64,000 nt of DNA from NCBI GenBank assembly GCA_010909165.1, contig MU008166.1:1426001-1490000 (forward strand), given 5' to 3'. This DNA is from Anthoceros angustus. Lineage: Eukaryota > Plantae > Anthocerotophyta. Below the pieces are notes generated by a model. That model ran no database searches and was not told the origin of the DNA. It was given only the letters and a program-made list of their open reading frames with translations. The translations under genes and the position numbers were made by a program. Positions 4,450 to 61,044 of this stretch are shown here, one piece after another (position 1 is the first letter of the stretch; the number at the start of each line of letters is the position of its first letter).

Positions 4450-7400
4450 TTAGGGCTCGTAGTTGAGCATGGGAGACAGCCATCTTTCGCACTCTGGCAG
4501 AGGCATTCCTTTGCGCTCTGAATACTCTTTCACCTGGTCGGAAGTTATTTTCCCCACGGCGAAGTACGAGCTAGCAGGGCTTGCGAAGTAGAGTCCAGAA
4601 ACAGAGGCAGCAGGGAGCATAGCCATGGATTCTGTCAGGAGTATGCCCGTCTGTTTCTCCGCATCCATGAGCTCCCACATGGTAGCCTTCTCAGTATGAT
4701 CCGGTTGAGAAGGATAACCTGGAGCAGGCCGAATACCCTGGTATTTGACACGCAGCAGATCCTCCACAGACATGTTTTCGTCTGCCGCATAGCCCCAAAG
4801 ATCCTTCCTGACATCCATATGCCACACTTCTGCTGCAGCCTCTGCGAGGCGGTCAGCCAAGGCCTCCGCCATGATGTAGCCATAATCATCATGGGTAGCC
4901 TTGAACTCTTCTATCATCTTTTCCAAACCAAATCCTGAGGAGACAGCGAACATGCCCAAGTAGTCCGGAATGTAAGTATCCTTAGGAGCAATGAAATCTG
5001 CTAGAGCCAAGTAGGGGTCATCTGATTCCTTCTCCGCCTGTTGCCGTAGGGTATGAAACTTGCATCTCACGGTTGTTCGGTTTTGGTCAGTGTAGATCTC
5101 AATGTCATCACCAACTGAGTTAGCTGGGTAGATACCTACGATGCCCCTCACCTCTAGTTTCTTGTTGGCCACTATGTCTTTCAGCATCACCAATGCCTCT
5201 TCATATAATTTCTTGGCTTCAGCACCTACTGTCTCATCGTTGAAGATCTTTGGAAAACCACGGTTAGGGTACCGACCCCTCAATTGCCAGACCTGGAAAA
5301 ATGGATTCCAGTCAATTGCATCCATCAGCTTCTCCAATGGATAATTCACAATGACCTTTGTCCCAAGGAACTTTGGTTCCACGGGGAAGTTTGCTGGGAG
5401 TTTCCAGTCCACTTTCAGCTTCTGGTCACGAGCTTTAGCCAGTGATACATATTTCCGATCCTCCAATCCTGCATAGTGTTCCTCCCTGAGATCAGCATAT
5501 GTCTCCCTTGTTTCCAACATGAAGTCATCCCGAGCAGTCACGTCCAAAAGGCTTGACACCACAGGTACACTCCTAGATGCGTCCAATACGTGCACCACAG
5601 GCCCGCTATACTGAGGCTCAATCTTCACAGCAGTATGCATGCGGCTGGTTGTGGCTCCGCCAATGAGAAGAGGAATCTTGAAACCTTCTCTCTCAAGCTC
5701 CCTTGCAACAGTGACCATCTCATCTAGCGATGGAGTAATTAATCCTGAGAGCCCGACCACATCGGCGTTATGCTCCCTACAGGCATCCAGGATTTTGGAA
5801 CAAGCACACATGACACCCAGATCAACAACCTTGTAGTTGTTACAACCTAATACAACAGCCACTATGTTCTTTCCGATGTCGTGAACATCTCCCTTAACTG
5901 TTGCAATGACCACAACCCCAGCATGTGATTGCTGGGCGAGATCTGGGTTTTCAAGAAGAGCCAGTTCCTTCTCTCTCTCCATGAAGGGGATCAGATGGGC
6001 CACGGCGCTTCATCACCCTGGCACTCTTGATGACCTGGGGAAGAAACATTTTTCCAGCTCCAAAAAGATCACCCACAACGTTCATTCCATCCATAAGAGG
6101 ACCCTCGATGATATGCAGAGGTCTAACATACAGACCACATGTCCGTGCTTCTTCCACATCATCTACAACATACTGGTCAATCCCCTTGACCAGGGCATAC
6201 TCCAACCTTTTGTTCACTGGTTGTTCTCTCCAGACATTTACCTGCTCCTTGGCACCCGAACTTGCTGACTTTGGGTCAACCCTCTGAGCCATCTCCAGCA
6301 TTCGTTCAGTAGCATCAGGTCTTCGATTAAGCACACAATCTTCAACGTGCTCCATCAATTCCTTATCAACATCATCATAGATGTCTATTTGCCCAGCATT
6401 CACAATTCCCATATCCATGCCCTCTTTGATTGCATGGTAAAGGAAAGACGAATGGAATGCCCGACGCACTGGCTCATTGCCTCGGAAGGAGAAGGAAATG
6501 TTGGAGACTCCTCCACTAATTTTGCATCCAGGGCACAACTGTTTGATTTTTCTCGTGGCATTGAAGAAATCCACGGCATAGTTGTTATGCTCCTCCAGAC
6601 CCGTTGCAATGGTCAAAATATTAGGATCAAATATTATATCCTGAGGGTTGAAGCCAACATCTTCAACAAGAATTTTGAACGCTCGAGTGCAGATCCGCAC
6701 TTTGTCATACTCTGTCGCTGCTTGACCCTCCTCGTCAAAAGCCATGACCACAACTGCTGCACCATGACGCTTTACGATCTTTGCATGCCTTCTGAATGTG
6801 TCTTCGCCTTCTTTCAGGGAAATGGAGTTTACAATGCACTTTCCCTGACTGCATTTAAGGCCCGCCTCAACCACATGGAACTTGGAAGAGTCTATCATGA
6901 AAGGCACCTTGGCAACCTGCAAATTCCCAATTCCAGTGAATTAACCGTGAAGTCACAGTGTAATACACAATCAGAAGAAAAGCTAGCAAGCCGGATGCTA
7001 CTGCGTGAATCACAAATCACTCACCTCGGGCTCTGATACCAGCAAATTCACAAATCGGGTCATGGCAGCCACTGAATCCAGAAGACCTTCGTCCATGTTG
7101 ATATCAATGACTTGTGCACCAGCTTCCACCTGCTTAATTGCTATAGAGAGTGCCTTGTCATAATCTCCGGCCATTATAGCCTTCTTGAATATGATTGACC
7201 CGCCACATTACAACGCTCTCCCAGGTTGATAAATGGGATGGTCGATGGAGTGTAAATGAATGGTTCAAGCCCAGATATCCGCATAAGATTTTCCACTTTA
7301 GGAATAGCGCGAGGCTTGCAGTGAGAAACCTGAGAATTGACATTGCAAGTTCCACATTACTCAATGTTGTTGACAATAGAGACGACTGCTCAACTCTCCT

Positions 7401-9945
7401 CAATGCTTTGTATTCGGAAATACTTACAATGTCTGCCACTGCCTTTATGTGGTCAGGTGTTGTACCGCAGCATCCACCAATGATGTTGATAAGGCCACCA
7501 GTTGCAAAGTCACGGACATTTTCCGCAAACTGTGATGGTGTTTCATCGTACCCACCCATAGCATTGGGAAGCCCAGCATTTGGGTAACATAAGATGTAGG
7601 TATCAGCAATCTGCAAAGCTGCACAGAGTTAAAACTCCTCATTGTACTTCCCAGGCTCCTGGATCTCCCAAGGTTTAAAAACAAGCATGCACATTGCAGG
7701 AGCCACAGACTTACCCTGTTCAGAGTGTCGACATAGCCACGCATATCCCTTGCCCCCAAGGCACAGTTCAGACCAAGGGCCACTGGTCGAGAATGGGAGA
7801 CACTGATCCAAAATGCCTCTCCAGTTTGTCCAGAGAGTCGACCACTTTGGTCAACAATAGTCCCACTGACCATTACAGGTATCTCATGACCCCAGTCCTC
7901 AAAATACTCATCTATAGCATACAAAGCAGCCTTTGCATTCAAGGTATCAAAGATGGTCTCCACAAGCAAAATGTCTACTCCACCTTTCACCAGAGCATCA
8001 GTTTGCTCCCTGTACGCTGCTACTACTTCATCAAATGTTGTAGCACGGTATGCTGGATTCTCAACGCTCGGAGAAACAGACAGAGTTCTGTTGGTAGGGC
8101 CAATGGCTCCAGCAACGAACCTTGGCCTAGTGGGATCCTGAGCAAGAACCGTATCTACAGCTCTTTGTGCAACCTTAGCTGCTTCAACGTTTATCAGAAA
8201 TACCTCCTCTGAGGCTTGCAGCTCGTAATCTGCCTGTGAAATGCATGTCGCATTGAATGTGTTGGTTTCAATAATATCAGCACCACCTTCCAGGTACTCC
8301 CTGTGGATTGTTTCTATGATTTCTGGCCGAGTGATGACCAGCAAGTCATTATCTCCCTTGAGATCGTGAGTATGATTTTTATACCGTTCTCCTCTGAAGT
8401 CATCTTCTTTCAACCTGTATCGCTGAATCATCGTGCCCATGGCACCATCAATCATTATAATTCGCTGCTTCATGATATTATCAAGTGTTTTGAAGAGATC
8501 CCGCTCCACGACTGCTGTATTCAGCCCGCTGGGGCTCAGAGGGGCATCTGGGTCAACTTTGCTTTGACCGTCAACAATAAATCTGGCGGCAACATCTCGG
8601 TTAGAGTTGGACACAACAATGCCTGAAACACACTCGTGACAGGGCACAACATACAGACAACCTCATGCAAAAGAGAAATACTGTTTAGCACGATACCTGT
8701 ATTCAATGGGGCCCTGTTTACAAGAATAGTCAATGTAGAACACCTTCTCCTGACTCAAGGACTTTTTCATCTGCACCGGTTTCCCACCAGAAAAACTTCC
8801 AACAACCGCCACATCTGAACCTCCATGGCGCCACAAAAACTGAATATAACCCAGCTCTGCTCAACACCAAGAGAATGCTTTAGAACACAAAGTAATGTTA
8901 ATTCTCACCATTGCCTGTGTCAAAAACGCCGAGCAACTCCTAAACCTCAGAATTGCTCAAATGGCAGACCCAAGATGGAGCAATCGACGTACTGTCACTC
9001 TTTGGAACTGGTCGGCGAGGAGGTGGATAGTTCATAACTGCAAAGACAGTGTTACACGAACATTACTAGGTGATTTTATTCATCTCCCACTTTCAAGACC
9101 AGATGATGATGGCATGACAGAAACAAGTAATACGGGGAGTGTTCCAAAATATGTGGGCACCACACCGATGCAGATCATGAAGCTTACCAGCTTTGGGGAA
9201 CTGATCGAGATCAAATGACTCAGACTGCTGAGGTGGAGAAGTTTTTCCCTCAGTTTGCACCGACTTTGCATCCTCACTAGCTTTTGCGTCATCTGCCTTC
9301 GAGATCTTGGATTCTTCAACTGTAACTGCGGGTTCTGTGATGGCATTTCCAAGTTTCGGGATGGACTTGACCGCAGATTCAGGCAAAGTACTGATAGACT
9401 TTGACGCTTCCTTCTCCAAGACTTTAGCAGCAGCCGCATCGGGTTCATTTGTAGGCAGTTTCTCCCCTTCAATGGGTGCAAGTACTGAAGTAGCTGGAGA
9501 CAGGCCAAGAGCCAATGTTATAACCAGCAGTCGGTAGAAACGTTTCCAGAACCACAGCGGGCTAAATCTAGACAACGAGATATCATCAGAAAGAAACAGG
9601 GCTCCCTACAATTCATGCTCACTGCAACAAAGCCAATGACAAGAACAACACAGGAAAATCAACCGTGACCGCAGTCACTCGAATCAAATACCCGTGCAAA
9701 ACCTCACCTCGTCTCTCAGAGACAGCACCATTTTGATCTTCAAGTGGCAACTCACGCTCCGCAGACGCTGGCACAGCTTTCTCGACGGCCTCATCCTTTC
9801 TAGGAAAAAAATACAACGCTACCGCCACGGCAACGATCCCTGGCACCAAAATGGACAGAAAAAAATTCCATGCCGCAACCGCAGCCACCACCACAGCAAT
9901 CGGATGATTCCTCAGCAGCGAGAGGAACTTCTTCAGCGACTCCAT
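4450..9945 (-). CDS. METH: Cobalamin-dependent methionine synthase with an N-terminal extension (hydrophobic anchor, acidic linker, CBM48/AMPK-beta-like domain). Predicted exons 9945-9708, 9493-9188, 9037-8993, 8856-8697, 8582-7715, 7610-7428, 7329-7025, 6916-4450. Apparent frameshifts at ~7199 and ~6006
   Basis: Homocysteine-binding domain ([24 protein letters not shown]); pterin-binding domain (GERCN, DINMDEG, IDSS, DPNIL); B12-binding [10 protein letters not shown] and SGLITPSL; reactivation domain ([25 protein letters not shown]). Introns are in-phase GT-AG. The three most 5' exons are less certain than the core. Confidence 0.93.
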
Positions 9946-59375: not shown

Positions 59376-59763
59376 AGGTTTGTGTAAGGTTATTATATGG
59401 GAGCCAGATACTGAGGGCTTCCCAGCAGTTGAGAAGACTGCGATGCTCCCCACACAGGACCAGGCCTAGTGTCGGGAACTTATTGTGCTACATCACTCAA
59501 TGGGAGTTAAAAAATCGTTCTACACCTTCAGGACTTCGGTATCTCGTTGCTTCCCGCTTACGAACAAGCTTGCGCGAAGTGCCCGATCCTACCTAGCTGT
59601 ACACCAGACTCTGCAGCAGCTTGAACAGATGTCATCCCGTGTTCCCTCTCCTCCACAAAATTCTCCCAGACAAGCCCCGTGCAGGGCTGCAGAATTATTC
59701 CAATCTGGACCCTGCAAATTCCAGTCCTTGCAGCCCGGCACAGAGCCAGCATGTTGGGCCGAT

Positions 59764-61044
<1,281 letters not shown>

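Follow-up and report, generated by a model that had tools for sequence, protein, structure and literature searches.

A methionine synthase (METH) gene of the hornwort Anthoceros angustus was found to encode, ahead of the catalytic domains, a composite N-terminal extension in which a predicted hydrophobic hairpin of 36 residues, a variable acidic linker, a Pro/Arg micro-exon and a domain of the AMPK1_CBM/CBM48 fold follow one another in that order. The gene lies on the minus strand (9945-4450) of the 64,000-nucleotide stretch of DNA that was analysed, hereafter the window, and its product comprises ~1,520 aa. B12-dependent methionine synthase (MetH) passes a methyl group from 5-methyl-THF to cobalamin and then to homocysteine, and METH has been modelled as a soluble cytosolic enzyme. 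The architecture described here, which recurs in other streptophytes, is on balance best read as a tethered form, in which the enzyme would face the cytosol at the ER or another endomembrane, held there by the hairpin and a flexible linker, while the CBM would give structural support or dock a partner rather than bind glucan.

Gene model and exon structure

The METH gene is constructed of the following elements, among which exons 1 to 5 (the last at 8582-7715) are read in one frame with zero stops and are separated by introns of 214, 150, 136 and 114 nt, with GT donors and CAG acceptors at the junctions.

9945-9708, minus strand: exon 1, with the ATG at 9945, a basic leader, the predicted hydrophobic hairpin and the start of the linker; the donor position is the same in the homologous locus L001, and an in-frame stop lies 22 codons 5' of the ATG
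9909-9802, minus strand: hydrophobic hairpin, predicted to be monotopic; 36 residues without D, E, K or R, internal prolines, basic residues on both sides, KD19 maximum 2.47
9493-9188, minus strand: exon 2, acidic low-complexity linker, poorly conserved except at its end (DLDQFPKA motif), with zero Pfam matches
9037-8993, minus strand: exon 3, a 45-nt micro-exon with the Pro/Arg motif YPPxRRPxPK, conserved in L001, L002, L005, P0155 and P0158
8856-8697, minus strand: exon 4, N-terminal two thirds of the AMPK1_CBM/CBM48 fold (Pfam E 3.8e-4; best PDB matches AMPK-beta CBM)
8582-8507, minus strand: start of exon 5, C-terminal third of the CBM fold, running straight into helix 1 of the homocysteine (Hcy) barrel
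8506-7715, minus strand: remainder of exon 5, homocysteine/Zn-binding barrel (PF02574; Pfam E 1e-66), Zn-ligand motif intact
7610-7428, minus strand: exon 6, end of the Hcy domain, with the GGCCG motif
7329-7025, minus strand: exon 7, start of the pterin domain, with a 1-nt frameshift near 7197
6916-4450, minus strand: exon 8, pterin, cap, cobalamin-binding and activation domains (Pfam), with a 2-nt frameshift near 6008 and the stop at 4452-4450

The four exons upstream (9945-8697) add ~275 aa N-terminal to METH. A preliminary description of this DNA had drawn attention to the 160-nt exon at 8856-8697, and its translation was reproduced here, together with the junction at which an Arg codon, split as AG and A, joins this exon to exon 5, from which no intron intervenes before the Hcy domain. 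The hydrophobic N-terminus and the acidic linker reported there are both present, and only their lengths need adjustment, since the uncharged stretch covers 36 residues rather than ~30, and the linker plus the micro-exon amount to ~145 aa instead of ~150. An alternative start at the Met of exon 3 was rejected, as this residue is Ile in L001.

The surroundings of the gene also deserve description. A P450 gene (Pfam p450; 3855 to at least 2500, minus strand) is located ~600 nt past the METH stop on the same strand, and its product presumably resembles the cinnamate 4-hydroxylase CYP73A. In L001, a class III peroxidase gene (L001 1-939) is situated ~2 kb upstream of METH; the peroxidase match in the window (59763-60928, minus strand) lies ~50 kb upstream, in the same relative orientation as in L001. 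The DNA between the window peroxidase and METH shows a purine skew, and no informative Pfam match came from its larger ORFs.

Comparative evidence for a single gene

The proposal that the upstream exons and METH constitute a single gene was confirmed by the in-phase exons and by intronless and full-length natural homologs, and the intronless homologs rule out the reading in which the upstream exons belong to a separate gene. Junctions 2-4 of the window are co-linear, being at most one residue off, with intronless and spliced homologs, and the intron within the CBM occupies an identical position in L001, L002 and L003. L001, retrieved in a search with exon 5, shows 88% identity and conserves all five exons, while L002 (72% identity) has an equivalent of exon 4 and, further upstream, the hydrophobic exon as well as a micro-exon. 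In L003 the exon-4 equivalent is found in the DNA upstream of METH, and the JGI locus L005 agrees with the window in its hairpin, the end of its linker, its micro-exon and its CBM.

At the level of its sequence, exon 4 is under purifying selection, with a pN of 0.087 and a pS of 0.82 against L001, close to the values of the Hcy domain (0.062 and 0.77). Moreover, the window hairpin scored 23.5 bits against a profile built from algal homologs only, compared with 5.6 for 500 core-shuffles (p 0.002).

Distribution and origin of the fusion

A search for the same architecture elsewhere, which the preliminary description had proposed as a check, recovered the combination of hairpin, CBM and METH in other streptophytes, including a second hornwort-like genome and the full-length natural proteins P0153, P0155, P0156, P0157, P0159, P0272 and P0273. 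The AMPK1_CBM domain accompanied by all METH domains was observed in several Closterium strains, in intronless Logan contigs (P0155), in the Trinity ORF P0156, in Coleochaete scutata (P0158) and in Mesotaenium (P0163). The loci L008 and L009 are intronless, and the latter carries an in-frame stop before its ATG. The Coleochaete ORF and the Mesotaenium v1 model are CBM-METH proteins from which the hairpin is missing, through either truncation or real loss.

When Hcy domains were compared in a tree, the 12 sequences with a CBM all fell into one streptophyte clade (97/87), where the window is sister to L001 and next to Coleochaete. Among the 120 best matches, the CBM is absent from METHs outside this clade, and no CBM-less METH is found inside it. 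The fusion appears to be standard, being present in every streptophyte METH retrieved rather than peculiar to the window genome, and because the CBM is confined to, and constant within, one clade, we infer that it arose once, in a streptophyte ancestor, on a sampling without Mesostigma and Chlorokybus. An exon-4 profile scan of JGI metagenome contigs returned no match, and P0137/L007 was discarded as an unrelated cluster member.

The premise of the preliminary description that algal METH is soluble and begins at the Hcy domain does not hold, for a hydrophobic N-terminus is found, with no CBM, in many METHs of chlorophytes and prasinophytes (Auxenochlorella, the Cymbomonas cluster, Prasinococcus-like and uncultured forms). 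METH matches from glaucophytes, most red algae, fungi and animals start near the Hcy domain. Judged from this pattern, the hydrophobic anchor is probably older than the CBM. Homology between the chlorophyte and streptophyte hairpins is only suggestive, with 4 of 16 cross-tests at p<0.05, and the idea that the CBM was inserted into an N-terminal strap already present in chlorophyte METH was rejected after a profile comparison (E 0.25).

Several relatives show further peculiarities of their own. Among the chlorophyte and prasinophyte METHs, P0291 (Cymbomonas, 2783 aa) harbors three tandem Hcy+pterin modules before a single cap/cobalamin/activation unit, and P0296 (Auxenochlorella) and P0279 harbor two before such a unit; tandem repeats of this kind are also listed for P0284 and P0151/P0152/P0161, and since they recur across taxa they are probably real. 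P0008 (labelled Prorocentrum) and P0166 have a single, shorter N-terminal hydrophobic segment and group with green-algal METH in the tree.

The hydrophobic N-terminus and a proposed membrane tethering

The hydrophobic runs of the homologs mostly extend over 31-50 aa, contain an internal Pro and are flanked by basic residues; a single charged residue interrupts the stretch in Closterium and P0156. Runs of this length are over-long for one helix and short for two, and they display the hallmark of monotopic ER/lipid-droplet hairpins (oleosin/promethin type), namely a hydrophobic stretch of 30-50 aa with a central Pro and basic flanks. The N-terminus is plausibly compatible with a hairpin that enters the membrane from the cytosol and keeps its two ends there, a topology that METH chemistry would also require, and a membrane tethering of METH is plausible on the same features. 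In appearance the N-terminus is unlike a transit peptide. A search of the ESM Atlas with the hairpin gave no match.

Under the preferred endomembrane reading, the hydrophobic stretch would dip into an endomembrane from the cytosol and return as a hairpin, the ER or an ER-derived membrane being the likeliest candidate, and the flexible acidic linker, whose length varies, would space the enzyme from the membrane. The CBM48-fold domain, which would have been fused on in a streptophyte ancestor, is devoid of the glycogen/starch-binding tryptophans in the alignment and is predicted to pack on the Hcy barrel. The AMPK-beta CBM sits on the kinase N-lobe, and by analogy the METH-CBM may act as a structural or protein-docking module. 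Catalysis would be ordinary MetH chemistry, the motifs being intact. Speculatively, the tether might keep apo-METH at the site to which B12, a scarce cofactor, is brought or at which it is reactivated, or close to ER consumers of methyl groups, and the proximity to B12 delivery or reactivation is the preferred guess because these lineages lack CblF.

Other readings of the same features were also weighed. METH could be membrane-tethered across green plants, with the streptophytes having added a co-opted AMPK/SnRK1-beta-type module that docks a partner, which might be a B12 chaperone, a reductase or an energy-sensing kinase engaged through the Ser that corresponds to S108 of AMPK-beta1 (see below). 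This wider proposal is rather doubtful; if true, it would imply a membrane-localised route by which the methyl cycle of land-plant ancestors was coupled to the delivery of B12 or to energy status.

It is unlikely that the hairpin targets METH to lipid droplets (LDs) as an ER-to-LD class I protein, thereby tying the methyl cycle to the methylation of lipids or sterols under stress. The length, internal Pro and basic flanks do resemble those of LD hairpins, and weak matches to Promethin (E 0.003) and Oleosin (E 0.002) were obtained in two chlorophyte METH N-termini; however, each family matches only 1 of 18 members, below the cut-off, on which grounds oleosin/promethin membership was rejected. 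In addition, METH is unmentioned in the text and part of the supplements of the Mesotaenium LD proteome, the proteome table lying outside this scope, and in an LD review.

Quite unlikely, too, is an attachment to the cytosol-facing side of an organelle envelope (plastid, mitochondrion or peroxisome), or to the vacuole or plasma membrane, near the sites where folate leaves or B12 enters. Outer envelopes, too, can be reached by means of N-terminal hydrophobic anchors with basic flanks, but outer-envelope signal anchors usually consist of one moderately hydrophobic helix of ~20 aa, and the METH runs are mostly 31-50 aa. In favour of an envelope or vacuole, algae and hornworts are without the animal lysosomal exporter CblF (Dorrell 2024, PMC11439496), so that another delivery route is needed.

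The CBM48-fold domain and its lost glucan-binding residues

The recognition of a CBM48/AMPK-beta-type domain was upheld by matches to the Pfam AMPK1_CBM profile and by the predicted fold. When the window was searched exon by exon, exon 4 alone matched AMPK1_CBM with 21 bits (E 3.8e-4), and the intact domain in natural spliced homologs reached 35.7-45.7 bits (E 1e-8 to 7e-12), the Pfam cut-off being 26.8. The AlphaFold model of the P0155 domain, for which the alignment included four canonical CBM rows, has a pLDDT of 83.5, matches the AMPK-beta CBM in Foldseek at E 2.6e-8 and deviates by an rmsd of ~2 A from the isolated CBM 1z0m. A profile derived from METH copies only retrieved AMPK-beta1 at E 5e-8, then Sip2 and LSF1, and the ESM Atlas offered generic CBM48 clusters only for this domain.

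The joint AlphaFold model of CBM and Hcy domain from a homolog (471 aa), whose alignment held only ~13 CBM-bearing rows, gave a pLDDT of 95-97 for the CBM and a pTM of 0.88, with essentially zero linker between the last CBM strand and helix 1 of the Hcy domain. As modelled, the CBM would pack rigidly on the Hcy barrel. None of the solved MetH structures aligns to the CBM part. The notion that the AMPK-beta helix after the CBM was brought along in the fusion was abandoned, as CBM-less METHs share the same first helix, and the extended match to AMPK-beta beyond the CBM is probably coincidental.

The glycogen-binding residues of AMPK-beta1 are W100, K126, W133 and N150 (PMC4032982). In all METH-CBM rows that cover both tryptophan positions, W100 is replaced by G or E and W133 by S, E or A, and K126 has given way to S, H, M or R in nearly all of them, whereas W, K and W are retained by the four canonical CBMs aligned with them. 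The window bears G, R and S at the W100, K126 and W133 positions, the Gly codon being 8785-8783, and the N150 position is ambiguous in the METH-CBM alignment. With neither W100 nor W133 retained in any METH-CBM copy, glucan binding by this domain is unlikely, and the glucan targeting envisaged in the preliminary description loses its footing with the aromatic platform, which is gone from all METH-CBMs examined.

Several surface positions (S, D, Y, Q) are invariant across streptophyte METH-CBMs. The invariant Ser (window 8761-8759, residue 32 of exon 4) aligns with S108 of AMPK-beta1, the phosphosite of the ADaM pocket; this match may be a structural coincidence. The retained CBM48 fold, these invariant positions and the strong purifying selection on the domain could also speak for a non-canonical site, through which glucan or another carbohydrate would be bound and METH targeted or regulated by carbon status. 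Such binding is nevertheless very unlikely in view of the loss of both platform Trp in all copies and the substitutions at K126; furthermore, METH appears cytosolic, whereas the starch of the green lineage is plastidial.

The METH core and its frame breaks

All five METH domains were detected by Pfam in order (PF02574, PF00809, PF02607, PF02310 and PF02965), and the Zn-ligand cysteines and the DxHxxG cobalamin motif are intact. The gene is best read as a vertically inherited hornwort METH, and B12-dependent activity is predicted; the occurrence of METH in a land plant is itself a pointer to a hornwort (Dorrell 2024, PMC11439496). Compared with intact relatives, the window has three short deletions, of 1 nt at ~7197, of 2 nt at ~6008 and of 3 nt at ~7838, the last gap removing an otherwise invariant Thr; L001, L002 and L008 are intact at the frame-break sites. 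The three lesions are all contractions in short repeats (TT; a GC repeat; AA plus a CT repeat), premature stops are absent elsewhere in the METH frame, and the amino acid identity is 0.96 and 0.92 on the two sides of the 6008 break. Because the lesions lie in short repeats, no other stops occur and conservation is equal across the 6008 break, both frameshifts and the 7838 gap are probably assembly errors. Incomplete Anthoceros METH models without PF02607 have been reported previously (Dorrell 2024, PMC11439496). That the two frame breaks and the lost Thr mark a recent pseudogene in the window genome only, the architecture still being real in the relatives, is highly improbable for the reasons just given.

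Implications

The path that B12 takes from uptake to METH in algae and hornworts is left undetermined by Dorrell et al. (2024, PMC11439496), and the conserved hydrophobic anchor provides a testable clue to the site of B12 loading. The fusion would predate land plants, whose last common ancestor probably possessed a CBM-METH, and the METH-CBM represents a clear instance of a CBM48 fold on which strong selection continues to act although the residues for sugar binding are gone. On the practical side, a gene model whose start falls within the CBM or at the Hcy domain is a truncated one, with consequences for the heterologous expression of green-lineage METH.

Comparison with known systems

Hornwort METH was published by Dorrell et al. 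in 2024 (PMC11439496), where a CBM, an extension or a transmembrane segment is unmentioned. In the literature searched, mainly non-subscription papers, a METH with CBM48/AMPK1_CBM or with a lipid-droplet or transmembrane link is undescribed, in agreement with what had been supposed at the outset. The AMPK1_CBM domain is visible in the automatic Pfam annotation of unnamed Closterium proteins, and the fusion has apparently been present in the databases but unremarked.

The window METH shares its five catalytic domains, in the same order, with the MetH of E. coli, Thermus and Thermotoga, with human MTR and with the published hornwort METH (PMC11439496), and the homolog model superimposes on human MTR 9ssp with a Z of 50 and an rmsd of 2.0. 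It is distinguished from the solved MetH and MTR by the ~275 extra N-terminal residues that comprise the hairpin, the linker and the CBM fold. The chlorophyte and prasinophyte METHs resemble it in the long Pro-containing hydrophobic stretch and linker before the Hcy domain, but the CBM is missing there. The beta-sandwich fold of the METH-CBM is common to the CBM48 domains of AMPK-beta, SNF1 Sip2 and SnRK1-beta and to the CBMs of LSF1 and SEX4. Unlike AMPK-beta, the METH-CBM is without W100 and W133, has K126 mostly replaced and is not followed by the beta-subunit C-terminal domain; and whereas the CBMs of these known proteins belong to a kinase scaffold or a glucan enzyme, that of METH is fused to a metabolic methyltransferase.
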